A stretch of 64,000 nucleotides of DNA from Amphiscolops sp. MND2022 (GCA_964187785.1 OZ076420.1:2728001-2792000); one strand, 5' to 3'. Numbered from the stretch's first letter, positions 1,815 to 57,824 are shown. Notes: generated by a model not told the origin, from the sequence alone. A program made the numbers and translations.

Positions 1815-2001
1815 CTACTTGGATTGAGGAGAGTATAGAATTTTGCCGACGTTTCTAGTCTTGGGGATTCTCCGGATCACTTCCCTGAGATTGTGTCTCA
1901 TGTTGTTCACAGCCGCTTCGTCGCCTCTCGCCTCTTTCTGCTTCAGCCGAACCACGTGCTGCACTTTTTTGATCATCGAATCCGAGAATGTCAAGTAATT
2001 G
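1815..2001 (-). CDS. SPG11: SPG11 last exon (13)
   Basis: Acceptor gtgttag|C at 2002, phase 2; reads SNYLTFSDSMIKKVQH...SPQSK*. Confidence 0.65.
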
Positions 2002-5000
2002 CTAACACAACAACATTCGGGGATTACCAATAAATATCCAACATTCAGAAATTTGGTTTTGTACAATCACGGAATTTTTTCTCAAAAAATCGTTTTTTTT
2101 TCATGAGAAAAATACTATTGTGATGAATCGATTCATCATTGACAAAGTTAAATGTGTCGCGTGATCCCTGATAGTATCAGGGATCACGCGACACGTTTAA
2201 CTTGGTCAATGATGAATCGATTTCATCACATCTGATGACGCTCAATTGGTCAGTCGATCAGTATTGGGTCTCATAAGATATTGAGCAGTCAAATGGGCTC
2301 TTTTCTGTCAATCCCCCACCATCTAAATTTTTCTAGGGAAACGTACAAAAAAAATTCAAACTCGCTTTATTAGAAGAGAAATTTTAAAGTTGACTTCTAT
2401 TGGAACAGTTTTTTGTTTGAACAAAACATTTTTCATTCACTTTGAATGTGATTATGTTCATATTTACTGTTTTTTGTGACTCAAAACAGGAAGCTGTTGA
2501 TTTCTTAATCAGAAATACGTGACCTCATAGGCAAAAATAAAAAAGTGTGAACAAAGTTTGTATCTCAATTGTAAACAGTCATCCTGAGAATAAATATAAA
2601 AGAAAAGGAACTTAGTTGTAAGTGTTCTTATTCTATTATTTGCACAACTTTTTTTTCAAAAAATTCAGGTGGTTCTTACAGAAAAGTTCGAAAGCTTTCC
2701 CATAAAAACGACATCTTTCACCAAATATATATAATCGGTTATTCAATTCCCAGACAATTCCGAGTCATTCTAGCTGAGTAAAAAATTACAATCGATTCTA
2801 CATTTAAATACATTGCAAAATATATTGGTCATCCCTGAAAGCGGTGAACAGTTTGAAATCTCCTCCAATGATTACTTTTTGGCACAAAAAGCGAGGCAAC
2901 AAAACGGGCGCTTTGTCGTAAGCTTCCAGAAAGGTCATGATTTGAACAACATGCGATAGCTTGTCTAGGATCTCGAAAAAGGTCACTTCGGGGGCAGTTT
3001 GAAGGTTCATAACTGCAACCGTTTCGGGGAGCAGTTGAATTTGAAGGGCGCACAGTTTGGCTTGTTTCAAACAGAATCGGGCTTCCGAGAACTTTTTGTC
3101 TTGGTTGAAGCAATTATACGCCTCAAAATAGTCTTTAGCAACATCGCCCAACATCTGAGTTGCCTCGGCGGTTCCCATGGTAACTGAGAATTTATACTTG
3201 ACGGTATTGGCCGCGCGTTCCCGAAGAACTTTGGCATACTCCTGAATGAAGTTTAGCTTTTTAAGGTAGACCTTTGATGGAGATGAGAGATGACCCTACT
3301 ACCCTTGTTTTTCGGAAATCACAAATTTTGCAAATTTGTTAAATGTTGAATATCTCTTACAAAAATCTGATAGTAAAATCTAGAATTTTGCAAAAGATGT
3401 GAATTTTTTCAACTAGGGTATAATCATTTACTGTATAATTTATTATAGCTTTTGCTATTAATTAATAAATAGTATTCTATTATAGATCCTATTTTTTGCC
3501 AATAGTATGATTATAGCTTCAATCCTTGCGCCCATCTAGGGTAGTCAGCTAGAGAAAAGTTGATTTTTTGAAAAAAAACGAAACATTAAAGACCATGAAT
3601 TAATTCTTATAACATTCAACGATGAGTCGAGTTTTCAAATTTCGAGGCAAAATTCTCATTCTTCTATTCCATCATCTCAAAAATAAATCATTATTATTGA
3701 CTTATATTTTCGTTTAAATATTTCTTTCGGTAACCCTGTAATAGGCTACAATAGAATTTCGAGCTATGGTCATCTCTGACTTTTGACTGCAAAGTTTCTT
3801 TCTGCTGTAGCAAGTGGGGCAAAATGAAGATTCGCAGCTCCAGCGCCGTTTCGGGATGGTTGTCTATGAAATCTAGCAAACATTTTCTATGTGACAAGAG
3901 TTGCACTACTTCTATACACAATACTCTATCGTGTGTCAGACATTTCAAGCAATGCACCGCTAGGTTGTAGTCGAAATGGGATCTCAAAACGGCCGTTAGG
4001 TTCGTGGAAATGGCTTCGAATTTTTTGACAGTACTCAGATGGAATGTTTTGCCCAAAAGTTCCAGAACATGGTTCATTAAACTCACAGCCGCGTAGTACT
4101 GTTGGGATTTGAGGAGGTCGAAAGACAAGCGACACATTTTCTCCATCAGCATCTGTTTGTCGGGCATGAGTTGAAGCAGGTTGTTGAACTTGGGAGTTGA
4201 TCAGGGTTGGAAAAAAGTTTTTATTGAAAAACAGAGCCGCATGTGCGGTAACATTAGAGTGCATAGGCAAGCTTACTTTGCTCAAAGCGCAACTTTGAGT
4301 TTTCAATACCTCGGATTCCACGACCATGCCTTTAACCGTGCAAACATGGCAAATTACGTCAATTACGGCACAGAATTTTGTGTGTCCCGAATTCCACGAC
4401 AAGCAGCAAAATAGCTTGCCTATGCACTGTAATGAAAGAAGTCGGAAACGGGTTAAAATATTGAAAAACAATGCTACTTTGTCATTTCGTCATTTTTGGC
4501 TATGTTTCTCAGATCCCAGAAATACGATTTTGATGCCATAACTGAAAAAAAAATCGTTCGAATCGCACGGTCAGTTTTTGAGAAAATCAAAAAAGTATAT
4601 TTTTGGACTAATTTTGGCTGTTTCTCAGATCCCAGTCATACAATTTTAATGCCAATGCGCACGCAAAGAATGACATTCAGAAAGAATGACATTCAGAAAG
4701 GACATTCTGCTGGTCCAATATTGATCATTTAGTTGAAATGTGGTACAAATGGATCAGAGGAATAATACGAGAAACAACCCCTCTTAGAACTAAACATCGA
4801 TCAAACCTTCCCCCATGGGTAACGTCTTCAACGTCGCACCTTATTAAGAAACTTAACACTGCGAAAAAACAGAATAGCAAATCAAAAATAGAAAAACTTG
4901 AAAAAGTTGTCTCACTGGCCCTGGTCAATGACCAAAAATCCTATGAAGAACATCTTTCAGATGGCAGAAATACCAACCGGTTGTTTAAGTTTTATCGCCA

Positions 5001-6921
5001 ACTGAATCGCTCCTCCTTGCCATCCTCAATGTTCCTTGCTAATGAAACACACACAACAAACCTCGGCAAAGCATCGCTATTTGCCAAGTTCTTCTCAAGT
5101 GTTTATTTCGAGTCCACGAAATTCAATCCAGACCAAGAGATTCCAGAATGTCAGTTCCCTATCATTACAAAACTTGAAGTCAACTTAGAAGAAATCTGCC
5201 AAATTTGCGATAGTTTGAACATCAGTAAAAGTAAAGGACCTGACCTCCTGCCGCCGATTGTTTTTGCAAAGTGTTCAAATTCTTTATCAAAATCTGTGTA
5301 TCAACTCATTTCAAAATCGCTACAGCTTGCCAAGTTCCCAACCTCGTGGAAGATTTCCGTTGTAAGTCCTATCCACAAAAAAGGAAACAAGTGTGATGTT
5401 ACAAATTATCGCCCAGTTTCTCTTCTGTGCATAATTTCCAAAATCATGGAAATTTTTCTCTTCATGAAGCTGTATGAACACTACCAAGATCAACTGCACA
5501 ACTCGCAATTCGGCTTTAGAAAGGGACGCTCGAGTTCCCTAAATCTGTTGGTTTATTTGGACGAAATTTATAGAGCCTTAACGGAAAAGCAACAAATTAG
5601 TGTAGTATACACAGACTTTGAAAAAGCGTTCGATCGGGTAGATCATGGCCTTCTATTGCAAAAACTGTTTCGAACAGGAATAAGAGGCAAACTTCTCAGT
5701 TTACTTGACTCGTACCTTCAAAACAGATTTCAAATGGTGAAAGTGGATGACGCTACATCACAACCATTTCCTGCAACCAGTGGAGTAGCACAAGGCGGCA
5801 TATTATCTTCACTATTTTTCAACATATTTATCAACGATCTTCCTCACATATGTCGGTTTACCTGGGCGATTCTTTATGCAGACGATGCAAAGTTCATATG
5901 TCTCAACTTAACATTATTAGAAAAACAAGAAGAATTGAACAATATTTTCATTTGGAGCGTGGATAATTTTATTAATTTTAACCTTGACAAATGTGGCCAG
6001 CTCTGCTTCACGAACGAAAACCATGATCAGTTGACTTTCGGCGGAGCGCCATTACAATCAAAGGACCAAGAAACAGACCTTGGTGTAATTATCACGAAAT
6101 CCCTGAGTTGGGTTCCACATTTCAAGTCGAGAGCCGAAAAGGCCTACAGAGTCTTTTACATGATCAAGAGAAACTCTCCCAGCCTAAGTAGCCAACACAA
6201 ACTAAATTTATACAAGAGCATGATCTTGCCAATTCTCACACACTCATCGATCATACTACCATTGAACGTGGAATGCATGAGAATCCTCGAAAGAGTTCAG
6301 AAGAAAGTCTGCAATTGGATTATTCCAGATAGTAGCTATAAGGACTGCCTTATCAAACTGAATATACTACCCGTCCCGTTTTACTTTCAACTGCTGGATC
6401 TCTTATATCTCTCGAAAATACTGACACAAAATATCAACTATGATTTTTCTGACAAATTTAACTATTACAACGAATATACTTATCACACGAGACTAGAACC
6501 CTATCGTTTCTTGCAAGAAAGCAGGCCTAAACCCGCTACTGCAGAACAAAATTTTTGGTTCCGAGCGAAACGTCTAGCCATGCAATTACCATCTCCAATT
6601 GACATTCGTGAGTATGATACTCTAAAACCGAAGCTGCTCTACTGGATGTGGCGTGAGTTTCTCGAAACCTTTGATGAACTGAACACTTGCACTTGGAGAA
6701 TGAAATGCGACTGTGTGGCAAAAAATTGCAGACTTTTGAACAACTGAAACCCTGACTCTCCTACGCAAGGTTTCTGAAACAGACTACTGCTTCTAGAACA
6801 ATGTTGGACTTTGATAATTTCTAACTGAAGTTTCAAATTTGTACACTCAATACATTATACAGTGTGCCACTTGATATATCTGGAAGGGGTTAAACCCCGT
6901 GTGGTGAAAACCACAGAATTC

Positions 6922-6952
<31 letters not shown>

Positions 6953-9900
6953 TTGTACGAAATTTTATAAAAAATAGTATGTACAGTTGTTGAGAAACTG
7001 TTTCATTGAAAGGTCGGGAGGAAAAATGGTACGATTGCATAAGTAGTCGAAATTTTTCCTCCTAAAACACGTTTTATACGTTTAAAACCAATTCAAAAGT
7101 TTTATTCGTTCAAAACACGGACAGTTTTGAAGTCTCTCGCGAGTCTGTTGCTAAGATCGGAAAGAACAAAACCCGTGGTTGAAAATACTCGCTCTAGACC
7201 CCCGCTACTGGGCGCCATGGACAGTAGATCTAGCGCGAACTCCATGAGAATTGTAGGATAGGCTCCCAAAATATTCTGGGATTTGATGAAATTGAGGATC
7301 TTTACATTGGGAGCCCTCTCAAATGATCTCTGAATATCTACTTTTGAAAAAAAAACGTTGAAAAAACGCTGGAAAAACAATTTGAAAATTACAAGTGATT
7401 AACAAGTCGGGAACGGCCCAAGTAGGCGCCCCGCTCAAGGTTCAAAATGTAAAGTTTTAAATAAACAAAAGGACATTATTGTAAATATTTTATAAAGTTT
7501 TAAGAGAAAAAATATTCATTGCAAATGCACGGAAAAGTTTCTGGCTGAAGCAGGGACTCGAACCTGCGACCGTTAGATTCCCACTAAACCGATTAACCTC
7601 TGTACCAAAAGTGGTACATACAGGGTGAGCTCTGTGGTCTGACGAACAAACAAGACGGAACGTCTAAAGTCGGCGCTATATCTAAGGCTCAAAAAGCGCA
7701 AGTCTTTTTGAAAAAAAAACTTGAAATTTTTATTTTTTTTTCTTTCAGAAAATGTCGCATAGTGCCGAAAAATGTAAAAGGGGGACCCTTTGGGCTTTAT
7801 TAACATATATTCTGTTGCAAAATATCAAAAAACTCGAAAGGGGGACTTTTTTGAGACATTAAAAAAATTTCGAAAAAAGTCGCAAAATGCCGAAAAAAAA
7901 TCGAAAGGGGGGACCCTTTAGTCTCGTCCGGTTTTGTAGGTTACGTTTAAAAAAGTAAAAAATGAAAGGGGAGCCTTTTGCACTAATTTCCGCTGACCGG
8001 ACTTGGCCTTATGGTAGTAATTTTAGTAGTTTTGATTGTAAGAAAAGTGGACCAATCAGAGTGAGATTGTAGTCTGACGAAAAAAAAACTAGCCACTGTA
8101 ACATTCGGGCTCTTTTCACTAGAAAAGCGCCGACTAAAAACTAGCCACTGTACTAGTTGGACAATTTTTGTCAAAAGCGCCGACCAAAAACAGCCTTTTT
8201 TTCAACATGTTTATTCAGCCAACCCTGATGTTGATAGTTGAGTTTCGATCGCGTTCTCTGGTTTGGTAGTAAGAGAACATAAACTGGAGGCAGCATTTCA
8301 CAACCATTTCGCCACTGACAGCGTTCGATGCCACTAGATCATGAATCAAACTGTGCTGCTCAGACTCGAGGCATTTCAGAATAGCCGAATGGATGTCGCA
8401 ACCGGCTCGTTTCAGGATCTTATTCCACTGATGGTATTCGCAATACATACGCATAAAAGGCGCGCAGTGGGGGTAGTATTGGGAACACATAGATGTTATC
8501 AAATTAGTCACCGGTTGTTGATTGTTGCTAACCAATCTGAGATCCATGAATCTTGAAAAATCAGCCAGGGTTATTTTATCCTCCAGAAGAAGCAAAGAAG
8601 CAATGACGAAACGGACAGCCGGTAAAGACTTACCGTAGTAAACACAAATTGTGATGGCCAAGTCAAAGCTCTGTCTTCTAATAAACTCGTTAACTAGGTT
8701 TGTAAATAATTGATCCGACATTCCTTTGCGAACTTGAAGATATTCCTTCAAGGGTTGCTTTTCCAATGCCGTCATGAGCGTTTTCATTTTAGCGAACAGC
8801 GAAAACTTTTTCAGCAAAAGTGAGTCATAGATTTCGATCGCTTTTTCAGAGTTAGTCGGGTCCGAGTCATTGTAGCATAACTCAACATATTTGAGCAACG
8901 AATCCACTTGAAGCTGATTCGAAACTGGTTCGGAAAGAGGAAGATTCATAGTCAGCAAAAACGTGAGTTCCGTGATCGAAAGATTCTTCTGCGTGATTAT
9001 ATGTTTGACCATGTCGTTCAAACTCATCCCGTAGGTTGCAACGTTGCTTTTCAACATCGCTTCGAAAAAGTATTCCCGCACAACGGGGGAACACGCCTGG
9101 AACAATGATGTACATTTATACATTTTTAAAATAGGCCCCTCTGGGGCTCAGTAAGTATTATTTCTGCTTTAATCTTTCATTTTCAATAATAGAATCATAT
9201 CTGGAATACCAATACACTCCTGTTTAATCACTATTTAGCGCACAATTAATCACTGTACCAGTTTATACCGCCTTGAATTCTTCTCGGACTAAAGCAAATA
9301 TAACTACTAAGCGTAAACAAAGTTTCGCATTCGCATTTGAATGCAGGCGTCGCTCTCGGCGAACGAATAATGAACACTCGTTCGCCTCATCTCAATGACG
9401 TCAGCGTACGAATGCATGATTACCACTCGCTCGTTCCATCGCACGAGAAACGAATTATTGTCTGCAGCTTGAGAAATTTGAATCTCACGCTTATACTCAC
9501 TGCCGAATAAAAAATACCTGAATTTTTCAGTAGATACAAAAATTTTAATGAAAAAAAGTGGAAATCTTGATGTTTCAATAATATTCCGTCTATCGCAGAA
9601 ATGAAATTATCACATTAGAACCGATATCATTTACACATTATGTCTTGTATCAGAAAGTATGTTTTTTAGTTCAATTTGAAACATTTCAAACTTTTGGGCC
9701 ACTTTTGTTCAAAAAACGCTTTTTACTTAAAAACAACATGCCCTAATTACTAGAAAATTCCTAGATTTGTTTCATCCATTTCGTGTGGACCTTGAAAAGG
9801 CCAAAAAATTTTTTTCAAACCATTTTCGATGTTATCAGTTGATGTCCATTTATATAATTTCAAAATTCAAATTTAAATACGAATAGTGAGTTCTTGAGAA

Positions 9901-12900
9901 AGAAATTTAAATCGGGCGAATGAATTTTTACAAAATTTAAATGACATCAACTCAAACTGAGTCGAGATGTATCGAGGAAGTTTTCAGTCTGTTTCTCCGA
10001 TTTTCTGTGAAAAAAGCTGATTTTGAAACTGCTCTTTCGACATTCGCGGGTGATGATAGTATACTCAGATTGCTTTTCAGTCTACCCATGACTAGGGTAA
10101 ATTAATGACGCAATCTCTTCTTAATGACGCAATTAAAGTCGCTGAATCGTTCTTGTGAAGACCATTTCTAACTTCAAAATTGACCATTTAAGCTGCATCA
10201 TTTGAATGGTTAACCCTAAATGGACGATAGGGTCGAATTCGTACCAGTTAATTTCTGCAAACTTCTGAAGGCACCAGCTGACTGTATGGCGAAGAAAACT
10301 CTTGAATAAAAATTTCAGACGATATTACAGCATTGCATGCATTTTGAAATATGCTGAAATTAAGTGGCGCGCAAGGTTTTTGGCGCAAAGTCTGGCGAAA
10401 CCCAGCAATTCAGAAATCAATTTGAAAGCCCTGATTGTCTTCTTTCGAATAGTAAGACATTGCGTTTTAAAGTTTAAGTACCAGATTTCTGGATGGGTCC
10501 GGAAATTTCCTCGTCCATGTAGTGTTAATAGTTAAATCAATGGAAAATTTTCTTTAGTTTAAATTGCAAAAAATAAATGTTCGACTCTTTTTTCTGTTTT
10601 CCCCCACCACCATTTTTTGCACAATTAGTGAAAATTTTCTCATTTAAAAAAGACTTGAATACAAACCAGAAACCTTCAATTTCAATTCATTTCCAGGGTG
10701 ACAATTTGCAATTGAGATATCAAATTCATTCACACTGTTTTTCCTTATGTAGTCACTCATTTTTTATTAGAAAATTAGGAGCTTCCTGTTTTGAGTCAGA
10801 AAAAAAACAGTGAATACCATCAAAATTATAGTTAAAATGTGTGAAAAATATTTTGTCGGAACAAAAAACTTTTCCAATAGACAGATTTCCTGTTATGAAA
10901 GAAGGTTTTACTTCAAATTAAGCTAGTCTGAAATTAAGGAAATTTACTCTCAACAATTTTGGTGGTGGGGGTTTTGTTAAACAGAAAAGAGCCAAATGTT
11001 CATCACTGGCCTGGACAATGTCGCAATTGACGGCAGAGAATTCCACGTCCATGAGAAGAGTGGAGAAGTCCAGACCTTCAGCCAGAGCCAGCTTCAACAA
11101 ATCCACGGCATCGTCAGTCATGCCTAGACGCCCCAAAATGTTACCAGAAAAAAACAATTCTCGAAAAATTACAACCATCTTACATTCCAGTGGTTCGAAT
11201 TCCACGCTATTTCATGTAACAATGTGTTTGATTTCATGTTGTGGAAAGGCTCCTTAAAAGTTCTTTCAAATCGTAAAAAGTTTTTGAAAAATCGAAAGAA
11301 GTCCAAAATTGGCTGTTTTTTTTGTCATTTTTGGGCTAATTTTGGCTATGTTTCTCAGATCCCAGTCATTCAATTTTGATGTTATGGTGCACACAGGGGC
11401 ACCTTTGGGTGCAGAATGACTGTGCTAAATTTTATGAAAATCGTCTGGACAATGAGAATTTTAAATATTCTTTGAAAGGTCTGGAGAAAAAAACGGGAGA
11501 AAAATCCTGCGGCGTCTATCCCAACCTCGTGACATTTCCTCAGTTATGGCAGCGTGAACAAGTTTCCCAACTCTGGCTCTATCCGGGAAATTCTGGCGCA
11601 TGTCCAGTTTGAAGTGGAACGGAATCCTGGAATCGTACATGAGGATGTAAAGATTGGCAAGTCCGTAATTGCGCAGAAACTCTTTCAACGGAGCAAACGC
11701 AATCACACACTTCTTTTGGAACTCTATGTTTCGGAAATACTTGACGCAGGATTCGAAAACCTCGTCTAGAAATAGCAAGCTTGAGTCTTCTGAAGAGTTT
11801 TTGAAGTCTTCCAGGACTGTTCCATTTTCCAGTAAAAACGATTCCATGAATGTCTCGAATTTTTCCAGACATTTTTCCATGTTTGGGATCGCCAAGAGAC
11901 ATTGTATAAGCTCGTCGGTCAAGTGCGTTGATTCCAGGGGTTCGCAATCACGTCGTAGAGAAGTCAGTTTTGTGCCCAAGGTCAAAGTTTGGAGCGAGAC
12001 TTTTGTCAAAACGGAAGCATTTCGGTGTCCCTTGGTGCCTATGTTTAGTCCACATGCGTTCAGAAAGAGGTCCAAGAAAATCTCGGGCGTTACATCTCTC
12101 AGCGAGCTAAAACAAGCGGCCACAAGAATGGGTTTTTTGCACTTGCTCAACGCGTTGCATGTTTTCAAGTCGTTCGACGGTTTTATCACCCTGAGAGCCG
12201 ATGAGAAGTTGACAAACATGGAGTTCAGGGTGCTTTTGCCGTCGCTGCTAGCTGCAGACTGGGAATCGTTGTCGTCGGGAATTGAGGAAAGTTTCGAACT
12301 CGAGGGAGTGGACGAGAAAGTAACAGCTTGGGCTGTTTCGCCCTCGACTGAAATTCCTCGGGACAACTGAGGTTGCAGTCTTTTGGTCACAAATGTATGT
12401 CTTTGCATCTTAGTGGCAGCCACGACCGACTGTTTTTTCTGAGAAGCCGTCAACGTGTGGGCGATTGTCTTGTAGTTCTTCATGAAACACAGCTCCAAAT
12501 GTTCCTTCAAGGGCGAATCTTCGAGATGAGTCACAAGCGACAGAAGCTGTTTGGTTGAAAACCCAAACTTGTGGCAGAAAACAAGGATGTCGATCCAATA
12601 CATGAAGTAGTCCTTATTGTTCTCCTTGATCAAGTCCAGAATCGGGAAGTACTCCAACATGGCATGGAACAGCGCCAGGAAGAAGTTCTGATCCAGAAAC
12701 TGGATGTAATCGATGGCTGAGAGACCTCCTTTCTCCCCCACCAGGTTCCCAGCAGTTAGGAACGTGTAGTCCGTCGACTTTCTTCTGGCAATGGCAAACT
12801 TGCTGACCATCGCTTTCGACACTCTGGAGAAGGATTCGAAGTTTAGGACAGTCTTGCAAGTGGCTGGGCGGTTCTGGCCCATGAATTTGAGGAGCTGGAC

Positions 12901-27200: not shown

Positions 27201-27630
27201 CAGAGGTGTGACAGCGATAGCGGTAGCGTTAGCGACAATCCAGCATGAATTAGCGATAGCGATAGTTAGCGACAAATTAAAGCGTTAGCGAACATTTTTA
27301 TTCGCTACAAGAATTCAAAATTAACTAATGCAATAATTTAATGGGAATAATTTGACACATCATATTGGCTGTGGCTTTTATTTTCTTTCGAACGGTTATT
27401 CAGTGTGCCCGGCAATGTGCAGAACCCACGGCGAACTAGATTTTGTCCAAATTTTTCTCAAAATTTGTTATTTGTAAAATACCATTCTGAAATTTTTGAA
27501 TGAATATCTTGAAAATCAGATTTTTTAATTAGCGATAGCGGCACCCAAAATAGCGGTCTTAGCGACTAGCGACAGCCCAAAGTTGAGACGATAGCGAACA
27601 GCGGTTTTGGGGGCCGCTGTCACACCTCTG
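27201..27630. mobile_element. hAT-type MITE, 430 bp
   Basis: 16-bp TIR CAGAGGTGTGACAGCG; 8-bp TSD CCCTAGAT/CCCTACAT; subterminal tagcga repeats. Confidence 0.88.
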
Positions 27631-27782
27631 CCCTACATATCATAAAAAGCAATGATGCCCTATTGCAGATGTTTATATGCGCAAAAAAAGCATTACAAAA
27701 AGCAAGAAAGTAAGAGGAAGGGGGGGGGAGGGAGGAGTGTTGTGGATTGGATTGTTGTGTCGTGTCGTGTGTTGTGTGGTCA

Positions 27783-27923
27783 TCACTTGAAGGCGGCGTT
27801 GAAAGCGCGGCCAATGACGAGTCTGCGCACTTCGGAGGTGCCCGCCCCTATCTCGTACAGCTTGGCGTCCCTCAGCAGTCTGCCCGCGGGGTAGTCGTTG
27901 ATGTACCCGTTGCCACCCAGACA
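27783..27923 (-). CDS. IVD: IVD exon 6 (last)
   Basis: [12 protein letters not shown]...RAFNAAFK*. Confidence 0.95.
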
Positions 27924-48900: not shown

Positions 48901-51900
48901 CGATCAAAGTCTACAACATTTGAGAAGTCATCTTCTAGTACAGGCTGTTGATTGAAACCCGGATCAGGGAATGCTGAAAAAATAATACATTGTGGAAAAG
49001 TTCACATTGAAAATGCGAAGACAGGATTATCTAAACATACAAAATGAGGGAAGAGAATTGAAGGCAGATTCGAGGATTCCTTTCGAATGAGGAGAAACTG
49101 GCATGGAGGAGCTAGATTCAAAGTCTGTTGAATCAGGCGACGAAGGAACAGTCGAAAGATTGGATTCACTAGAGGAGCGCCTATCGCTACTTGAACCATT
49201 GCTGCTGCTTGAAGACGCTACAAAAATGGCTTGTCACAAAAACTAGATGTTAAGTTTTTTAAAAAAAACATGGATTCAATGACCTGACCTGATTCAAAAG
49301 TTATTCGGTGGTGGCCAAACGCCAGAGACGATATCCCATTGTCCAGAATGAACCGCTTGTCATCAAAACTACTTACTGCCACTTTATCAATCTCATTGGC
49401 GAGAATCTGATGACAAGGTGAACGTAACTGGGTCATCGTTTTGGTCACAGACAAAAAGGCACTCCTTAAACAAATGATGGTTCAGCGTTTTTTTCACAGT
49501 TTTCTGTACACCTTTGACACTTTGCTTCTTTCCGCCAATATAATCAATGCTGTATAACTTTGACCGCAGGCAAACCACTTCATGCAATACTTTACCATTG
49601 AGTTCATCAGTCATAGTGAGTGGCACTTTTTTTGTTGGTAGGGTCATACAGCGGATGTTCTGGCGGATAGTCGGAAAGATCCAATAAATGCTTAAAGCTT
49701 TCCATGTCTTTGTATAGATCAGATGTTTCAACCTGGTACAGTAAGGAGTCGGTATCTTTATAAGCAACTTTCAATCGATCTGAAGAGTAGCGTGGTACCA
49801 TCTCTTCATAATGAAATTTGTACAAAGACAGCTTGGACAAATCGAGAAAGGAAGCCCCAACAGGAGTAGGCTTGGTCCATAAAACAGATGAATTTTTGAA
49901 TGACACGGACAACAAATTATCATTAATTATTTGGAACGATTTAAACGTTGCGCGCTGTGCTAAAGTTTCAGCTTGCTAGGGGTTGGTAACAAACTTCATT
50001 TGAGAACGCTTTCGCAAGTTTTCCATAGTTTTCCCGAAGCAAGCATTGCTCAATACTTTGTAGAAATTCTTCTCGAAGTCATTGGTAGCTTGCTTTCGCA
50101 TAACGGTGTTCTTCTCTATGTGCACCCCCAACCATGTGCTTTGCTGGAACTCGCAAACACGATGTAACTTTGAAACTTGGAGCCCATGTTTTACATAAAA
50201 TTTCAAATTCTGATAGTGGCAAACGTAATTTTTTTATCGTATAAAGTTTCGACAAGTTTCGGCGTTTTGCTGGCCTTGATACCAAAAGAATTCGCATGAG
50301 GAGAAAGCCAAGAAGGTCGAATGCACACTTTCTCTGGGGCAAGTGGCAGGCCATTGTGACTATCGTGCAAATGAGACGGATACTTTAAATCAACCTCAAC
50401 AAAGTAACCAACATTGGAATCTTCTGGGGTCTGTAGAATTTCTGCAAGCGTGATACAAGTATTCTATTTGTAATTTCCTAAAGGCATCATTTTCTGCATT
50501 GTCCCAGCGTACAAAGAAGTCACATCAAAAAAAGCGCCAAACGTAGTCGTTTCATTGCCGTCAAAACTTTCCAAATAGGGGTTGTTTGCTTTGAAGTGTC
50601 TCAATTCGCCAACTCCATTGATACCTCCACGGATAGCCCGTTCGAAAAAAAGAAGCATGTCAATATCCTCTAATAACCCTAGTTTAACATTAGTTGAGAT
50701 AAGCATCGCTTCCCAGCTTAAATTTGGAGCTGAATACAAATGTGTAGGAGCAAGTTTGTATACACTGAGACATACACTTCTAAACTTTTCAAAGATATCA
50801 GCGAGGATAAGCACATCTGTTTTCAAGTATATGTCATGGTAGTCTCCAAGGTTGTTACAACTGAACTCTTTATAAACGTCTAGTGCGTGTTGGTAATCAG
50901 CAAAGGTTATGTCAATTTTACCAGAGAGACTGTTTCTCCATGATTCACCATATTCTGGTAAAGGCTTTTGAAACTTCGTGAAGCTATCTAAATAACTATA
51001 GGGAAAGAAACATTTGCGTGTAATCTTGCCAAATAAATTATCGGGAATACCCAAAAAATCATCTTTCAGATGCTTGAAGTCTGTTTGGGACAGTGTTCTT
51101 GCTAAACTTTCAAGACTCTGAGAAACAAATTGATAACTGTCCAAAAAACGGAGGGAATGAACCAACTTCACAATTTTCCCGCATTTCTTTTTATATGTAC
51201 CCACGGGAACATTGATACTGAAAGAAATAAAAGTTTCGTCGGTTTTTGATATAGCTGTCAAGTCTTCGGATGGCTTCAGTTTCAAATTTTTAATAATGTG
51301 ATGAGCATCATATCGGGACAAAACGTGAAAAAAATAGGGAGAAAATTTGGCAATCGGGCTCTGAGATTACATCTTGAAGGTGCAATTCCGAATACAGCTC
51401 CAGTTAAGTGTCAGTGATGTATAACACGGTCTGATCTCTCAACGTCTTTTCCACAAATAAAGCAAGTTTTCGCATTTGCTTTCTTTGCTGCTTCGGAATA
51501 TTCAGAAATCTGTAGTTTTGTTTTTCTCTATAACACCAGGAAAGCCAATTCCTCAGAGTATCTAACAACTTGGAGATAGGATCTTCGCCTCTATAGAATG
51601 ATTGCTTTGTAATTTTATTGCCTGAAACAGTAGCGTTCGTTTACGAAGCTTACACTTTCTTCACCAATTGAAAGCACACGGTATGAAGTTAGAAAAAAAG
51701 ATAACTTACTTCTGGAATCAACTAACACAGCACCATAACTTGCTGGGTACTGCCTCTCCACTTCCCGGGTTCGACTATGGGTTGCAGTTTGCATAACTGT
51801 TGAGGCTACATTAATCGCTTCGAGGTCAGCATATACCACAAACGGACACTTTTGAGTCTTCTCCCAATGAAAAAACTCAATGCTTGTTGACTCGTTAGGC

Positions 51901-54900
51901 ATTCGTATTTCCAGCGGTGCATTCGTCTCGCAAAACATAACGTGCTTCTTGAAGTTTTGTTTGACAATGGGTTGAAAGCAGTTCCGGCAAAATCGGGATT
52001 TGGGACCCTTCCCTTGCTCAAGTTTCGATCGAGTCAGGAAGTGAATCAAACTGGAAAAGTGTTTGATCAAACAGTAGTGATTGTTTTTGATGTCGACCAA
52101 CCGCAAAAGATCAGTTTTATTCCTCGCCTTCCGATTTTTTGTGTGATATACAGACACTAGCTTACTCTCCTCCAATTGGTAAACATTGATGGAACAGTCA
52201 TTTTTTCTTTCGAAGCAAGGGATTGACGTTAGAGGCATTGGCATAAGTTTCGAATTGAAATGTAGTCCCTGGATGTTTTTCCTGTGTGACTTGGGACTTG
52301 TGGCTCTTCCAACAAACGAAAACAATGCTGCCGCTATACGGTACAAAAAGCAGAAATTGTCCCGTTTGTTAACGATATTTAAAATGGTTCGGGTCAATGG
52401 CTTTAGGAGCGCAGAGGTGTTTCAATGTATGAAGCACCAGTTGCGTTACTGCACGACACTGTTTTGATTTCCAATCGCTTCAAGGACTGTACCACCCAAC
52501 CGGAGCCTCCAGTAGCAAAGACATTCAACTGACTCATCAATGCATCAACATGTTCATGGTATTCATCATCCGTGAAGGCACATGCGATTCTGGACATTGG
52601 TGAATTGAAAAAGCCTCAGTAACTTCGCTCTTAAAAGGTTTCTTCAATTTGACACTGATCGTTATCCCCAGCTTAACATTTGGTGTTTCTTTCAAAAGAT
52701 TGTTCACGAATCCAATAACTCGATCTTTGTGAGGAACCAAATAGTTGAATGGCTCCAATGCTCTATCACTCTCCAACTTGACGCGATGAATAAGGAATTT
52801 CGAACTTATTGCTTTAGTCGTGAATTCAAGCAAGCTAGAGACATCAATCGTATTCGAGTGAGGGGTTTTTGTTTCACCATGGAAAACTTCGTTGTGATCT
52901 ACGAGTGCAGCTTCGTTCCCAAAATATGTGAGACAGGAGAAGCAACGTACACTGTTATTTGAATTGTGTTGTTTCCTGATGTGTCTCAATAAGTTGGAGC
53001 TAATTGTAAAGCTCGCATCACATTCACCACATCGGAATATCTTCGCATTGGAATTGCTTTGACTATCGTGTTTTTTTTTTCGCATGTGATCTTTCAAAGC
53101 CCGTTCCGAGCCAAAAAGTTTAGCACATTGGGTGCAAGAAAAGATGGTGAAATTCGTTCTTTTAGTTCATAAACAGGTAAAAAGTCGTGGTCCGTTTATT
53201 TCACTACAAAAAAAATCAGCACGGAAAAAACAGCACTTTGTATTTTGGGACCACAGCTTTTTACGGTGCTGGGTCACGTTTTCCGATATTATAGAATTCA
53301 AATTAAAATATAACAGAGCGTCGCAATAGTACTATGGAAAGTGAATTTGAATTGAGGCTCAGTTCATTAGGTGAGAAAGTCGAATTATCGGATTGAAAAT
53401 TATCGGATTGACCAAGTCAGAATTTGATAGCCTACTTTCACTCTGTTAGTTTTGTTCACTTTCCGATTTCGGTACCGAAACTACCGTTAAAAGTTTGCAC
53501 AACAAAGTAATTGTGACTACGGATGACAGTTGGTTTGCATAGGATTTGATAATCTATATTTGGTTCAAATTGTACTTCGAACTCTCTGACTAAGATGAAT
53601 TTCGGTTTGGGATCGAAAAATTACACTTAGTGGTTTGGGATCAAAAAATTGCAGATGGTGGTTTGGGATCGAAAAATTGCAGTAAACCCCCCTTCTCTTA
53701 CTACTAGCGTGCGTTCAGAATCTTGATTCCAAAAATTAGACAATCAAAAGTGACAAAATAGAAAAATAGAATTCAAGATTATATAGATAATATTAAATGA
53801 TGAGATAATATTACGACAATATAATGCTAAAGGAGAGGGGAAAAGGTTGGAAATGCTGCTTCCCGTAGCGCCGCAAACTTTCAATCCTATTTACCACCGG
53901 TATACGAGCAGTTGTCTGCTGAGGCATCACTAAAATTGAATGTAGATTCGGGAAATTTAGAAAATTTAATCTTATTGGTTCGAGAATTTGATTGAATGTC
54001 GTTTTGCAAATTTTCAGCGTCCTACACGGCAAAGCAAGGGTTTATCTACACGAACCGAGTTTATCCAGCTTGGGAGACGTGGAGAATCCCTTCATGCCCT
54101 TCTCGACGAGAAAGGCGGAGATGCTGTGCTGGGGCTTGGAGTCCTGGTGGGCAGCAGTCTTGGCGTAGACGACGAGGACATCTGCGTCGGATCCATTGGT
54201 GATCCAGAACTTGGTGCCGTTCAGCAGGTAGCTCCTCCCGTCCGGCTGCAACTGGGCAGTCAACTTCATGCTGACCACGTCAGAGCCCGCGTTCGCTTCA
54301 CTCATCGCCAGTGCACCCACGTGTTCGCCTACAAGGGGAAGGGAGGGGGTTGTAGCAATAGATTATTTTTAGTCGGCGCTTTTCTTTAGAAAAGAGTCGA
54401 CTATAGTCATGGCTTTTCGTCAGTGTTTTTTTTAAGACCTGCTGAACTGACCAAAATAGTTCTACCAAAAGTTCTACAAAATTTTCAGAAGAAGCCAAAA
54501 TGTACCTGTTGGCCCAAGGAACTGAACCAGAAAGGTTTCGCGCGTAACATACAATACCGGACGAGACCAAAGGGTCCATTTTTTCGGCACTGTGCGACTT
54601 GTTTCAAAAAACTTTTTTCCCCACGAAAGGCCCCCCTTCAATTTTTTTGGAGTTTTGCAACAAAATGGATGTTGAAAAATCCCAAAGGGTCCTCCCTTTC
54701 AGTTTTTTTTCGGCATTGTGAGACTTTTTTCAATTTTTTTCATAAAAGTAGTCCCAATTCAGCAATGATTGGAAATTTTGAAGTCCTTTTGCTATTTTTG
54801 AGCCTTGGATTTGGCGCCGACTTAGACCGTTCCCGGCTTGTTTATTCAACAAAAAACAATTATATGAAATCAGTATTTACAATCATCGTGTACAGACAAA

Positions 54901-57824
54901 AGCGCCCATTTTACACAGTCATATGCGCCCCAATGCAAAACGTCTTACTAATTTTTGAGTTGATTTCACCGCCTCTAATTAAGCGTAATTGAAGGTGTTC
55001 AAAGACAAGATTGACTCACTGGTATTGCCAGATTTCACATTCTCACACCTAACATATCTCAATTGAAAACGACTTAAACTGCTAATTGGTGGTGGAAACG
55101 AGTCAGCAAATCCTCTGTAGTTTTTGATTGGGGCGCTTTTGTCTGGTAACCAGAATGATACATCGTCGGAAATATAAATGTTGGAATTGAACTAAAATAG
55201 TAGTAGACATAATCATAGTAATCCATCTACTCATAGTATGTCTATCATGGTATGTATAGTATGTCTACTATAAATTATTAATTGATAACCACTAGAATAA
55301 ATTGAATATTGTTAGGAGCATTAGGTAAATTTTCATTTGACTTTCATTTACTCTGACCGGAAGCATAGTTTAATCATTCAAAGCTCCCTGTCGAACGGAG
55401 CGGCCAATCACAATTAGGAATTCTATTCGGTTCTGGTAAAAAAAATAATCTGAATTATAACCGTTCAGCTATACAACCTACCACGAATGGAGAACGATGG
55501 TGTTCGCCTAGAAGCGAGGAGTTTTGTGGCAAAAAGTCGGAATTATTTCAAATCAGGGTCCTGCCGAAGGCTCCAAAAGTGCGAATTTCTGAAGAAACTT
55601 TGCCAGAAATGGAGACCAAAAAGAAGACCCTTTGGTCTATGTAGCTTTGTATTTCGAGTAACAAGCCGGGAACGGCACTCTCATAGGAATCTTCCGCGGA
55701 ATTTTGTTCATCATGAAAGACTGGCTACAGCAGCGTTCTAAAATATCGCAACTCCATTACTCAAAATGACAAAACTCAAAACCAAATTTGTGAGTTTTCA
55801 AGACATTCGGATTAGAAATTTCCAATTTTCAGCAATGGAGTTGCTATATTCTAGAACGCTGTAACTTCCTATACTAAAGCAATAGTAGTTGAATTATGAC
55901 AATCCCAAGTGGGTGCATATCAATTTTTATGACCATTTTTATTTCAATAAAAGTCGGTGTTTTCATCACAGTTTTGACATCGCTCAATTCCCGCTATATC
56001 CTTTTCGCTAAACCGCTAACTTCAAAATCGCTATTTTTCAAATAATTAAATGTTTGAATTCAAGTATGCTTCAAAATGATAACTTAACTCAAAGAAAAAT
56101 TTCTCAGATTGTGTGAGTTTTACGAGTGTAGGAATTGGAATTTTTCGAAATTCATTTTGAAACTCAGTGTATTTTCGAAGTTGCCGCTAATTTGAATCGC
56201 TAATAAAATCGCTGGAAAATTCCGCGCAGCCGCAAAATGGCTGACTAGCGGTGTGAAAACTCTGGTTTTGATCTATAACAAGCCGGGAACGCCCAAGTCG
56301 GCGCCATATCTAAGGCTCAAAAAGACTCGAAAACGAAAACCACTGTTTCTACAACTGGAGACAACAAAAGCTCTCAAAAAACTAAAAATTGAAAAAAAAA
56401 TTCCGATTTTTTTCGAAATTTTTTTGAACTTTCCGGTAAGTCGCATAGTGCCGAAAAATGTAAAAGGGGGACGCTTTGAGATTTTTTGAACATCCATTCT
56501 GTTGCAAAATATCAAAAATTGATGGGAGGAACAATAAAAAAATTCGGAAAAAAAATCAGTCTCGCAGTGCCGAAAAAGGGGGAAAGTCTCATAGTGTCGA
56601 AAAAAATGGACCCTTCTGCTTTGGAATGGCTTTTTATCTCATGTTAGAGGCTCTGGATGCGTTGAAAATGAAGTACTAAGTACATATGGTAAAAGTTGGT
56701 AAATGTGCATTAATGCACAAAAAGTGGACGTTTCGCGTTGAACTGACCAAAAAAAACTAGCCACTGTAAGAGTCGGGATTTTCTTCGAGAACGCCGACTA
56801 AAAACTATTCAAACCTGAAATAAGTTTGGGCAAGTATTTCTGTTTCTGTTGCTCGTTGCCGTGTCTCACGATCTGGTTGACACACAGGTTGGAATGGGCC
56901 CCGTAGCTGAGAGCAATGCCGGCACTGGCTCTCGAGAGTTCTTCCATGGCAATGCAATGTTCCAAGTAGCCCAGTTGTGACCCTCCATATTGCTCCGGAG
57001 CAGTGATGCCCAGAAGTCCGAGACTGCCCAGTTTCTGCCAGAAGTCTCGCAGCTCCGGGAAATTGTTTTCCTGTACAGATTTGACATGGCTAGTGAAGAA
57101 ACATTCATTTGCGCTAAAATTGTTGCTTATAATCGAAGTACACCAGGGTAGCAAAAGCTTAAAACAGCCGATTTGGCTAACTAAAATTTTCAAAGCGCCA
57201 AATCTTTTATTATATTAATTTTACAAAAATATATCGGGAGCAAAAGTCACCAACACTTTTGATCAGCTATTCAAAGGTATTTCGTGTTTTGAAATCGCAT
57301 CAAAATTAGAAAAATTATATCACATTGTACAGTACTGTAGGCTTTTTTAGGCTCCATTTTCTCGAAATTTCAAAAACTCTCATTTCAAAAACACGAGGCT
57401 CAAAAAGTCGTCATTGAAAAAGGAAGAATTACTGTCTCAAGAATCTCAACAATGCCTAACAGCAGACAAAGCTGGTTCTGGTCCTACGTAAAAGATAGAA
57501 GACATCTCCGCAAATTTCAACCATGTATCCACTTTCAACCGCTGATGACTAAAATATATTCACACGATGTCAAATCTTGGTTTCCTTGTCGATCCTATCT
57601 GCAATTGGCGCCAATTCTTCCTGGGCGAACTTGGACACAGAGCGTCTGAGTTGGATTTGGTCAGAATTCAGGCCATAGAGCCGATCATCAATTTCTGTGG
57701 CTGTGTGGTAGTTAAGTCTCTGCGCCGCGGGTAAAGCCGAAAAGACGACGTTCTTTCGGATAGCGCTGCAGGTATACTTCAATGTCCAAGCCAAAGACGA
57801 AGACATTGCATGTCTGAAATGCAT
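27783..57824 (-). CDS. IVD: Isovaleryl-CoA dehydrogenase, mitochondrial; 6 exons (57824-57585, 57070-56815, 54328-54056, 35252-35013, 32094-31934, 27923-27783), about 436 aa
   Basis: Joined translation matches the acyl-CoA dehydrogenase IVD throughout: [113 protein letters not shown]. All phases are consistent (1311 nt). Confidence 0.95.
29941..30546 (-). mobile_element. Family M copy
   Basis: Both ends present. Confidence 0.75.
31167..31769 (-). mobile_element. Family M copy nested in a T-run of another repeat
   Basis: The flanks rejoin into the repeat seen uninterrupted at about 14990-15075. Confidence 0.8.
31835..31895 (+). repeat. tRNA-derived SINE head
   Basis: TGGCGCAGTTGG...GGTTCGAACCC; similar B-box remnants at about 7550 and 58725 (minus strand). 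Confidence 0.55.
31934..32094 (-). CDS. IVD: IVD exon 5
   Basis: [10 protein letters not shown]...ALDTIQ; donor CAG|GCTTGT (GC). Confidence 0.95.
34529..34900 (+). pseudogene. BEL/Pao LTR-retrotransposon pol fragment
   Basis: [37 protein letters not shown], the Pao RT-RNaseH connection motif. Confidence 0.8.
35013..35252 (-). CDS. IVD: IVD exon 4
   Basis: [15 protein letters not shown]...GHFQFMQG. Confidence 0.95.
36046..38907 (-). CDS. LINE ORF2: AP endonuclease plus reverse transcriptase
   Basis: QYNARS, ICETW, GGVLIA, GDFN, SNHEP (APE); [23 protein letters not shown] (RT). The frame is open from directly after the ORF1 stop. Confidence 0.97.
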   Translation of the reverse strand, partial: LGLSDQLFSVLQYNARSIINKEKRISLSNYACMKDPDIIMICETWLTKFFNDEELYLPQYDLFRSERLPNKDGNSLHGGVLIALKKRYTGRKITLPTKYLGACTACTFTFDSSTILLINCYFPPSESEYILSPSVITELFNIFATTKHDALIMTGDFNYSDIDWRDLSYQNESQKLLLNFAEKMNLDQKVTFNTTVSGIYDLFFISRKIEVQDIRIAEEIVGVKSNHEPLWSVFTVRGHGNKFKPENSSEFLSYCKADYLRMEELIIQNPFETFCWSNIDHLVEMWYKWIRGIIRETTPLRTKHRSNLPPWVTSSTSHLIKKLNTAKKQNSKSKIEKLDKVVSLALVNDQKSYEEHLSDGRNTNRLFKFYRQLNRSSLPSSMFLANETHTTNLGKASLFAKFFSSVYFESTKFNPDQEIPECQFPIITKLEVNLEEICQICDSLNISKSKGPDLLPPIVFAKCSNSLSKSVYQLISKSLQLAKFPTSWKISVVSPIHKKGNKCDVTNYRPVSLLCIISKIMEIFLFMKLYEHYQDQLHNSQFGFRKGRSSSLNLLVYLDEIYRALTEKQQISVVYTDFEKAFDRVDHGLLLQKLFRTGIRGKLLSLLDSYLQNRFQIVKVDDATSQPFPATSGVAQGGILSSLFFNIFINDLPHICRFTWAILYADDAKFICLNLTLLEKQEELNNIFIWSVDNFINFNLDKCGQLCFKNENHDQLTFGGAPLQSKDQETDLGVIITKSLSWVPHFKSRAEKAYRVFYMIKRNSPSLSSQHKLNLYKSMILPILTHSSIILPLNVECMRILERVQKKVCNWIIPDSSYKDCLIKLNILPVPFYFQLLDLLYLSKILTQNINYDFSDKFNYYNEYTYHTRLEPYRFLQESRPKPATAEQNFWFRAKRLAMQLPSPIDIREYDTLKPKLLYWMWREFLETFDELNTCTWRMKCDCVAKNCRLLNN
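38908..39750 (-). CDS. LINE ORF1 (coiled coil plus RRM/CTD-like RNA chaperone), 280 aa
   Basis: Duplicated heptad [14 protein letters not shown]; RLGK...RPRTLLVKF...VFISKSLS pattern typical of LINE ORF1. Confidence 0.85.
   Translation of the reverse strand: MGERGRLASADSSYYPTLDEVLSSTDDDLNKYLNKTVKGNVVSLFKELINRYRDNGTIKTEIGEMKQSLAKVVEEVQQLKEQPPPSKATYSEITQSLAKVVEEVQQLKQPVPTKVTNNEVTHNEVNINERSIELRVSGIPEFKSSHSKPNRSEQIDYEEKSIASIVKYLECEDDCIKSFHRLGKYQPNTTRPRTLLVKFKTELVVNKILARANKLRFYEGDGIQDKYKVFISKSLSKTEQELENKLLKKRRELINEGNQPSTLRIRSFELFLNDRRVDLN
41800..41908 (+). repeat. Polinton left TIR
   Basis: Inverted match to 53597-53705 (about 8 mismatches by eye); three internal copies of ttt(c)gatcccaaacc. Confidence 0.95.
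43373..43933 (+). pseudogene. Polinton accessory ORF: N-terminal PLA2-like motif and C-terminal hydrophobic helices (possibly two fused small genes)
   Basis: GGDIGPA...[12 protein letters not shown] resembles the viral PLA2 G-P-x loop plus HDxxY; the stop overlaps the ATPase ATG (ATGA). Confidence 0.4.
43930..44643 (+). pseudogene. A32/FtsK-like DNA packaging ATPase with two in-frame stops (44161, 44452)
   Basis: Walker A GPAGCGKT, Walker [26 protein letters not shown]. Confidence 0.92.
44640..45410 (+). pseudogene. Polinton small basic/core-like ORF remnants
   Basis: Basic then amphipathic tail [27 protein letters not shown], followed by an interrupted ORF (to about 45410); position after the ATPase is typical of Polintons. 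Confidence 0.4.
45411..46154 (+). pseudogene. Minor capsid protein (penton, single jelly-roll), N-terminally truncated and frameshifted
   Basis: [24 protein letters not shown]...[25 protein letters not shown], typical Polinton mCP motifs. Confidence 0.85.
46260..46556 (+). pseudogene. Small Gly-rich virion/core protein precursor
   Basis: [17 protein letters not shown]...AIPVIKKY...GKNLL, like the conserved small ORF between penton and MCP; a candidate adenain substrate. Confidence 0.55.
46847..48115 (+). pseudogene. Major capsid protein (double jelly-roll), with stops and frameshifts
   Basis: [54 protein letters not shown]; stop near 46955 and frameshifts near 47690 and 48010. Confidence 0.9.
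48144..48622 (+). pseudogene. Adenain-like (Ulp1 family) cysteine protease, frameshifted
   Basis: Catalytic pattern GRHW...WDCLG...Q..SNLCGLYC. Confidence 0.88.
49218..53140 (-). pseudogene. Protein-primed family B DNA polymerase with N-terminal C2H2 fingers and an EndoVII-like Zn motif; fragmented
   Basis: YDAHHII, FLDSYQF, YLKTDV (exo); [31 protein letters not shown]...FGH (pol); CFICG..H*HLTG..CNL. Confidence 0.95.
53597..53705 (-). repeat. Polinton right TIR
   Basis: Reverse complement of the left TIR. Confidence 0.95.
54056..54328 (-). CDS. IVD: IVD exon 3
   Basis: [21 protein letters not shown]...KLDKLG. Confidence 0.95.
54366..54842 (-). mobile_element. Family M copy at the 3' end of IVD intron 2
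   Basis: Both ends present. Confidence 0.75.
56277..56804 (+). mobile_element. Family M copy at the 5' end of IVD intron 2
   Basis: Both ends present; inverted relative to 54366-54842. Confidence 0.75.
56815..57070 (-). CDS. IVD: IVD exon 2
   Basis: [15 protein letters not shown]...KYLPKLISG; acceptor gtacag|, donor G|GTTTGA. Confidence 0.95.
57585..57824 (-). CDS. IVD: IVD exon 1 (transit peptide to RIDK)
   Basis: [35 protein letters not shown]; donor AAG|GAAACC is non-canonical. Confidence 0.9.

Follow-up and report, generated by a model that had tools for sequence, protein, structure and literature searches.

Paired intron ends in SPG11 and IVD of Amphiscolops sp. MND2022 are probably terminal inverted repeats of hAT-type transposons that have become introns

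A stretch of 64,000 nucleotides of DNA from Amphiscolops sp. MND2022 (GCA_964187785.1 OZ076420.1:2728001-2792000; hereafter the window, with a G+C content of ~38%) carries two host genes on its minus strand, SPG11, which encodes spatacsin, and IVD, which encodes isovaleryl-CoA dehydrogenase. Many introns of these genes have ends that can pair with each other, here called clasps, and several begin with dinucleotides other than GT. Our analysis indicated that the clasps are probably the terminal inverted repeats of hAT-type DNA transposons that have turned into introns, which is a known route of intron gain and not a new splicing system. The original prediction, made from the sequence alone, had put forward a selected splicing code as its headline and, as an alternative, relics of the terminal inverted repeats of intron-generating transposons. 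It was the alternative that received strong support, from hAT-type repeats, target-site duplications in register with the splice junctions, introns that equal an element plus 8 nt in length, multicopy elements, a transposase relic and an intronless homolog.

Eighteen introns were modelled. Every in-frame, stop-free donor/acceptor pair between neighbouring exon open reading frames (ORFs) was enumerated, and the pairs were ranked by alignment to the homolog P0002/P0003 (40% identical) in SPG11 and by alignment to human IVD (structures 8sgr and 1ivh) in IVD, whose distal exons were located by motif scan and ORFs. SPG11 junctions are designated J1 to J13 and IVD introns I1 to I5; junction J3 (22.7 to 20.4 kb) was not fixable and was excluded. 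The SPG11 exons from position 19694 to the stop chain into a single open frame of 1798 codons, with 32% identity to the homolog over 1830 columns. When the 502-residue SPG11 exon was searched against 1.84 billion protein representatives, a single relative was retrieved, P0002, at 40% identity, and no further SPG11 homolog was found at E<0.001 with this query; judged by its sequence, spatacsin of this lineage is highly divergent. The only detectable SPG11 homolog is intronless, because P0003, a cluster mate of P0002, is encoded as an uninterrupted ORF of 6279 nt (L001:10001-16279) on a 418-kb metagenome contig. The alignment to this homolog crosses all SPG11 junctions and is gapless at J7, J9, J10a and J13, and the SPG11 introns were judged to be absent from the orthologous positions in P0003, a comparison with one distant relative that concerns SPG11 only. 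Four public runs, all from one sample, contain this DNA (~70% of words present, introns included), and since the intron words are present in them, the runs are genomic. Precise removal of the modelled introns from mRNA is suggested indirectly, by the open chained frame of SPG11 and by the conserved IVD peptide.

All 18 modelled introns had AG acceptors, in agreement with the original prediction. Donors other than GT were found in seven of the 18 (one GA, three GG and three GC; Table 1), each preceded by an exonic AG, which reproduces the one GA, three GG and two GC donors reported earlier and adds one more GC. All four GA or GG donors have A at +3. On the modelled junctions, the seven introns show the features of the GV-AG class, namely G at +1, A, G or C at +2, a 3' AG and an exonic AG. 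No in-frame GT donor was found for I1, where use of the lone GT among the final 60 nt of exon 1 would remove 16 conserved residues, and at J7 a GT donor in the required phase is absent.

Pairing of intron ends was measured as the longest perfect Watson-Crick match between the donor region (-8..+27) and the last 50 intron nt. The longest stem was that of J7 (19 nt), followed by I2 (13 nt), I1 and J11 (11 nt each), I5 and J12 (10 nt each), J5, J10a and I4 (8 nt each) and J13 (7 nt), and the remaining eight introns gave 6, 6, 5, 5, 4, 4, 4 and 4 nt. The comparison of true with mismatched intron ends that had been proposed as a check of the original prediction was run on the introns of the window, and true pairs were longer: inverted repeats of at least 8 nt bounded the intron body in 9 of 18 cognate pairs as compared with 8 of 306 non-cognate pairs (2.6%), and stems of at least 10 nt were present in 6 of 18 and 1 of 306, respectively (binomial p ~2e-10 for both thresholds). 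Matches between donor windows and internal windows of the same intron never exceeded 9 nt, and among 2800 trials with random pseudo-introns of the same lengths, 5 (0.18%) gave 10 nt or more. A chance origin of the stems was ruled out by the non-cognate and pseudo-intron controls. When imperfect arms were included (J13 15/17, J10b 13/16 and J1 11/13), approximately 12 of the 18 introns had paired ends, which is close to the 11 or so of the original prediction. Terminal arms were not seen in J2, J4, J6, J8 and I3 among the 18 introns; the exceptions listed earlier were confirmed, I3, J6 and J9 being free of stems.

An explanation of the non-GT donors and of the stems as artefacts, arising from mis-modelled junctions, assembly errors or chance, was considered highly improbable. 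The junctions were indeed modelled from genomic DNA, the homology of SPG11 is low and alternative in-frame choices exist at some junctions, but I1 has no GT alternative that fits the conserved protein and J7 has none in phase. Furthermore, the junctions of the first 15 introns had been fixed prior to any stem computation, the stems are insensitive to junction shifts of a few nt, the assembly is matched by DNA contigs from four runs, and the chained coding sequence is open throughout.

The sequences of the arms point to a transposon origin. The original prediction described the arms as differing between introns and not as one repeat, but most of them have a common hAT-like terminal motif: the arms of J1, J7, J10b, J12 and J13 open with (C/T)AGnGATGA, and those of J11, I4 and I5 with CAGGGT. 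Counted over both strands, the window has 10 occurrences of the motif [CT]AGnGATGA; seven of them are no more than 20 nt away from a modelled splice site, as compared with ~0.2 expected for sequence that makes up ~2% of the window. The hAT superfamily is defined by an 8-bp target-site duplication, YARNG ends and a hAT transposase. The starts of the inverted repeats fit YARNG (termini CAGGG, CAGTG, CAGAG and TAGTG), 8-bp duplications were identified at J5, J9, J10b, J11 and J12 and at an element away from the exons (24950-26076), and the ~4-kb element of J11 retains a remnant of a hAT transposase (E=4.3e-5, 23.7 bits as compared with a cut-off of 21.4), which is a fragment only. The small elements are non-autonomous. 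The repeat type is independent of splicing, because elements carrying it also occur away from exons, as listed in Table 1.

Target-site duplications of 8 bp were found in register with both junctions in J9 (8/8), in J5 (CACAACAG/CATAACAG, 7/8), J10b (GTCCAGGC/TTCCAGGC, 7/8) and J12 (TCAAAAGT/TCAAAGGT, 7/8), and in J11 (ATCAACAT/ATCAACTC, 6/8). In-register identity of at least 7/8 was observed in 5 of 18 cognate pairs as compared with 6.9% of non-cognate pairs (p=0.006). Exactly 8 intron nucleotides lie outside the element in each of J5, J9 and J10b, so that the intron consists of the element and one copy of the duplication; J10b, for instance, reads as GC, the element and TTCCAG. This geometry is exact in these three introns, holds in J12 with a 7-nt filler 3' of the element, and is matched within 1 nt in J7 and J11. 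J5, J9, J10b and J12 have their two splice sites at corresponding points of the two copies of the duplication, and the same duplicated bases therefore serve as acceptor AG and as exonic AG. The inverted repeats of J9 are decayed, and the intron has no stem. In J10a, 7 nt precede and 1 nt follows the element, which sums to 8, and the duplication is unrecognisable. J13, I1, I4 and I5 show no clear fit to the duplication geometry, the arms themselves being clear. Of these, J13 has an arm whose first 9 nt are identical to the J7 repeat, I1 has arms at +8..+20 and -19..-7 and direct repeats (ACAAGGAAAC/ACAGGAAAAC) that span both junctions, and I5 has repeats that extend 4 nt into the exon, a 19-nt tail and an unrecognisable duplication. 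Simple 8-bp duplications were tried for J13, I4 and I5 and rejected.

The J7 element has the best-preserved repeats and was followed by read depth, which was determined from the DNA runs for one stretch that includes the J5 and J7 elements; splice joints did not appear there. Within the J7 element the summed depth was ~1900-2170, as compared with 56-86 in the flanking exons (~30-fold), and 7-24 contigs with variant letters lay inside it (15-24 at 16530 and, for runs X1, X3 and X4, at 16554). The element is multicopy, and the depth is read as indicating only that. The unique contig on the exon side begins at 16817, exactly outside the J7 repeat, and the exonic CAG before the GG donor is therefore the first 3 nt of the element repeat. 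The flanks read ...ATTATGAC (CAG^GGATGAG...CTCATCCCTG) ATTGGAC-TAG^TAAC, with the element in parentheses and ^ at the splice sites, and the second copy of the duplication is short of one base. Removal of the element and of the second duplication copy gives ATT ATG ACT AGT AAC TAC (IMTSNY), and splicing from CAG^GG to TAG^ gives ATT ATG ACC AGT AAC TAC, which encodes the identical peptide and is gapless against the intronless homolog.

Several points weigh against a transposon origin of the clasps. The homolog, at 32-40% identity, is the sole one and may itself have lost introns. All junctions are models from homology and frame, the public runs being genomic; those of J1 (whose 5' exon is weakly supported), J6 and J11 are weakly fixed, and plausible alternatives exist at J1, J6, J11 and J13. 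Several clasp introns have no recognisable duplication, the tails of J13 (13), I5 (16), I4 (25) and I1 (13) do not total 8, and the fit of J7 and J11 requires a 1-nt indel in the intronic copy of the duplication. Multicopy status was seen for the J7 element and the I2 family only, and summed contig depth does not equal the true copy number. Finally, the resemblance of the CAGGGATGA terminus to that of maize Ac is presumptive, and a literature search for the string gave primer matches only.

A different origin would be that all elements inserted into pre-existing, very short introns and that none of the introns was created by a transposon. I2 fits this description: its element, whose terminus is repeated at 8081-8191 and 31167-31230 inside two other introns and which thus belongs to a multicopy family, is flanked by 10 nt (5') and 37 nt (3') of other intron sequence, the donor is canonical and the tail is 90% pyrimidine, so that I2 looks like an older intron of ~47 nt with a pyrimidine tract in which an element landed. 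The introns of the window are also packed with nested repeats. As an account of all introns, this explanation was considered quite unlikely: J5, J9, J10b and J12 have one exonic copy of the duplication and splice sites inside the duplications, the repeat itself enters the exon in J7, J11, J13 and I5, no non-element sequence is left over in J5, J9 and J10b, and the homolog is entirely intronless.

The splicing code that headed the original prediction would have pairing juxtapose weak AG^GN donors with their acceptors and be kept by selection, with stems that were perhaps born from transposons. Pairing is strongly enriched at the intron ends, the perfect 19-bp stem of J7 closes the entire intron in the predicted fold, paired ends are present in five of the seven non-GT introns, and the nonconventional introns of euglenids need end pairing (PMC11282704). 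However, when the stems were stratified by donor dinucleotide, as had also been proposed, no dependence was found, with 5 of 11 GT introns and 4 of 7 non-GT ones carrying stems of at least 8 nt (Fisher p=1.0). The length of the stem was correlated neither with the number of matches to the U1 consensus (Spearman rho -0.19, p=0.46), which does not uphold the earlier claim that the donors most complementary to U1 are free of stems, nor with intron length, and J9 lacks a stem in spite of its non-GT donor and perfect duplication. In the older arms (J13, I1, I4 and I5), mismatched positions read A.C, G.A, U.U and C.C and are neither wobble nor compensatory. The arm offsets are variable, the 5' arm overlies the donor in J5, J7, J11, I4 and I5, and the 3' arms occupy the region expected to contain the branch site and the pyrimidine tract. 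Hairpins that sequester splice sites hinder their recognition, for example by blocking U1 binding, unless recognition is co-transcriptional. The same repeats are also carried by elements far from exons. In this small sample, the equality of stems between GT and non-GT introns, the lack of a trend with donor strength and the non-wobble mismatches argue against a selected code, which was therefore considered unlikely. It was likewise given little credence that the spliceosome exploits end pairing to define AG^GN introns, in which case hAT-type miniature inverted-repeat transposable elements (MITEs) would be self-sufficient structured introns, and U2 splicing in a metazoan would have a branch that is assisted by structure.

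Under a transposon origin, most clasp introns would have been gained as follows. An element would insert into a continuous exon and duplicate 8 bp of the target, and the transcript would be rescued by the spliceosome, which would excise the element together with one copy of the duplication. The 3' AG would be provided by the target, at the end of the duplication or just beyond it, and the exonic AG before the donor by the other duplication copy or by the CAG at the 5' terminus of the element itself. The dinucleotide at the start of the intron would then be whatever follows the AG supplied by the duplication or the element end: GG from element ends of the type CAG^GG, GT from ends of the type CAGG^GT, and GC or GA from sequence of either target or element. 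The donor would thus be derived from the first bases of the element in J5 (GG) and J9 (G and C), from the end of the duplication in J10b (GC) and J12 (GT), and from the element end CAGG^GT, which would provide a canonical GT, in J11 and I4. Such a derivation would explain, with no appeal to structure, why every non-GT donor comes after AG. Its requirement would be that, after an exon ending in AG, any base at intron +2 is accepted in this lineage, as in Eurytemora and Oikopleura, and the donors of the window suggest such a tolerance. End pairing would be a side effect of how transposons are built, would erode as the element ages and is presumably neutral. A minority of introns, exemplified by I2, would be cases of an element within an older, tiny intron and not of intron gain.

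The anatomy described here can be compared with several known systems. Introners, i.e. spliceosomal introns derived from DNA transposons, are known from Micromonas, Aureococcus, dinoflagellates and many aquatic eukaryotes (PMC9860276, PMC12130899, PMC11282704), from Styela and sea urchin (PMC12130899) and from metagenome bins labelled Eurytemora, Lepeophtheirus and Oikopleura (PMC9860276 and its supplement). As in the window, an introner comprises an inverted-repeat element and one duplication copy, the element supplies one splice site and the duplicated target supplies the second, and the elements are multicopy with lineage-specific positions. In contrast to introners, the introns of the window have a hAT-type appearance (8-bp duplication, YAGnG ends and a transposase relic), comprise several families that have only the terminal motif in common, and include a large share of GG, GC and GA donors, as known here from one window. 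The case belongs with the known introner anatomy, and its special point is the link of GN-AG donors to hAT-type ends and duplications.

Tolerance of AG^GN donors has been documented in Eurytemora affinis, whose GA and GG donors were described by Robertson as having A at +3 and requiring an exonic AG (PMC5714493), and in Oikopleura dioica with its GA-AG introns (PMC7072748). In both, as in the window, no intron base of the donor is fixed except G at +1, the exonic AG is obligate, and the introns appear recently gained, with at least 10% affected. The portions of these papers that were consulted describe the donors without a transposon origin or end pairing (PMC5714493, PMC7072748). The genes of E. 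affinis described there have many exons, whereas the genes of the window have few, very large exons. A 'GV/AG' intron class is listed for tunicates other than Fritillaria in PMC13326754. The non-canonical MITE introns of Fritillaria borealis (Henriet et al. 2019, as related in PMC11282704, PMC13326754 and bioRxiv 10.1101/2025.08.15.670264) also have duplications at exon borders and species-specific positions, and a permissive U2 spliceosome, which may likewise be present here. However, the introns of Fritillaria are for the most part AG/AC and AG/AT, have YAY triplets at their borders and do not end in AG, whereas all introns of the window are of the form G..AG with an exonic AG; neither a YAY triplet pattern nor a non-AG 3' end was present among the 18 introns, which are thus not of the Fritillaria type. 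Euglenid nonconventional introns have base-paired ends with CAG/CTG-type repeats near them, duplication-like repeats and a suspected MITE origin, all of which resemble the introns of the window, but their borders are variable and not GT/AG, their pairing is fixed at +4..+6 and -8..-6, and their excision is non-spliceosomal (PMC11282704, PMC12501133). The introns of the window have uniform G..AG borders and arm offsets that range between -6 and +23 and between -50 and -2, and do not belong to the euglenid type.

Other repeats were observed in the window. In the interior of J13 (2126-2222), a near-perfect 48-nt palindrome (96% complementary, 1-nt spacer, centre ...GATCCCTGATA/TATCAGGGATC...) resembles a head-to-head junction of two element ends of the CAGGG type. 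Short MITE-like repeats, or repeats resembling short interspersed nuclear elements, 200-400 nt in length, occupy most introns, at summed depths of 1e5-4e5 as compared with ~60 in unique sequence. The interior of J5 contains nested high-copy MITEs, one of them at 19078-19268, with a depth of 1.6-4e5 as compared with ~50-70 in unique sequence; an ORF at 18957-19199, which the original prediction had probably taken for an exon, was rejected as one, since it overlaps a very high-copy palindromic MITE (summed depth >3e5 as compared with ~60 in the DNA runs) and has no counterpart in the homolog. J11 contains MITEs and a nested long interspersed nuclear element (LINE) encoding endonuclease and reverse transcriptase (4702-6948, +), which is 99.8% identical over 2247 nt to a copy in I3 (35845-38091); the I3 copy has an intact ORF of 943 codons (36046-38877, -), and very recent LINE activity is suggested. 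A protein search with the LINE ORF retrieved matches from mixed phyla. I3 also contains a decayed Maverick/Polinton-like element (41800-53705) with 132-nt inverted repeats (41800-41931 and 53574-53705, 88.6% identical), a fragmented protein-primed DNA polymerase B (49976-51321, -), a Pox_A32-type packaging ATPase (43930-44454, +) and a C2H2 zinc-finger ORF (52537-53097). The reading frames of this element are split into many pieces. Rfam and tRNA scans of the window gave no matches. Between 14700 and 20500, runs X1 and X3 have many single-base differences in common in unique exons and introns, which are mostly absent in X2, and X4 carries some of these differences and not others; because the runs differ although all four come from one sample, two haplotypes or individuals are probably present in it.

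Table 1. Positions of genes, modelled introns and repeats in the window (^, splice site)
Feature	Position (nt)	Strand	Splice sites	Element, repeats and remarks
SPG11 (spatacsin) gene	1818..24744	-		at least 15 exons; Pfam Spatacsin_C, tblastn with P0002, chained model
J13	2002..2834	-	GG-AG, cag^GGATGACC (donor cag^GGATGA)	arms TTCAGGGATGACCAATA/TTCGGGGATTACCAATA 15/17; no clear duplication
J12	3272..3780	-	GT-AG	element 3285-3778, repeats CAGAGATGACCATA/GAGAGATGACCCTA
J11	4189..8223	-	GT-AG, cagg^GTTGG	hAT element 4202-8227, repeats CAGGGTTGG 9/9
hAT transposase C-terminal dimerisation domain remnant	7105..7398	-		within J11 element; PF05699 Dimer_Tnp_hAT
J10b	9097..11010	-	GC-AG, cag^GCCAGT	element 9103-11008, repeats CAGTGATGAACATTT/CAATGATGTACATTT 13/16; length = element + 8
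J10a	11124..11525	-	GT-AG	arms TAGACGCC(G/C)CA 10/11
J9	13025..14819	-	GC-AG, cag^GCAAGG	direct repeat GATACAGG 8/8 in register at donor and acceptor
J7	16465..16813	-	GG-AG, cag^GGATGA...GACTAG^	element 16475-16816, inverted repeats perfect 19/19 (CAGGGATGAGAATTTATTG)
J5	18831..19449	-	GG-AG, cag^GGACCA	element 18839-19449, arms GGACCAT.. 12/16; length = element + 8
J1	23364..24531	-	GT-AG	arms CTAGTGATGACCA/CTAGAGATGAGCA 11/13; 3' arm ends exactly at acceptor
IVD (isovaleryl-CoA dehydrogenase) gene	27783..57824	-		6 exons, 5 introns; Pfam Acyl-CoA_dh_N and Acyl-CoA_dh_M on exon ORFs
I5	27924..31933	-	GC-AG, cag^GCTTGT	repeats (A)CAGG(C/G)TTGTTCACAA 15/16
I4	32095..35012	-	GT-AG, cagg^GTCAGT	arms CAGGGTCAGTA/CATGGTCAGTA 10/11, 29-nt tail; weakest case
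I3	35253..54055	-	GT-AG	18.8 kb; no terminal pairing; holds Maverick/Polinton-like element and LINE
I2	54329..56814	-	GT-AG	multicopy-family element ~54366-56804, arms 15/17 (13 nt perfect)
I1	57071..57584	-	GA-AG, aag^GAAACC...GTACAG^gaa	arms AGATTTGACAT(C/G)G 12/13
hAT-type element away from exon junctions	24950..26076			repeats CAGGGTACCAAAAAA/TAGGGTACCAAAAAA; duplication ATTTTATT/ATGTAATT (6/8)
Second such element off exons	40659-40986			deep in I3
Short repeats	14894-15087, 17998-18191, 18774-19549
Related short-repeat copies	7650-8190, 29940-30546, 31167-31770, 35450-35846, 54543-54847, 56277-56577, 59728-60345

For annotation of this genome, the results imply that gene predictors demanding GT or GC donors will break many genes, and that MITE ORFs can pass for exons. 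The window traces, nucleotide by nucleotide, how introns can arise in an animal gene, and it offers a concrete origin for the class of GG, GA and GC-AG introns found in a few marine animals, tying this class to transposon invasion and a permissive spliceosome. If such intron gain is genome-wide, the genome would be a candidate animal model for the study of introners. In addition, the 19/19 repeat of J7, the multicopy element and the recently active LINE suggest that intron gain in this lineage may be ongoing.

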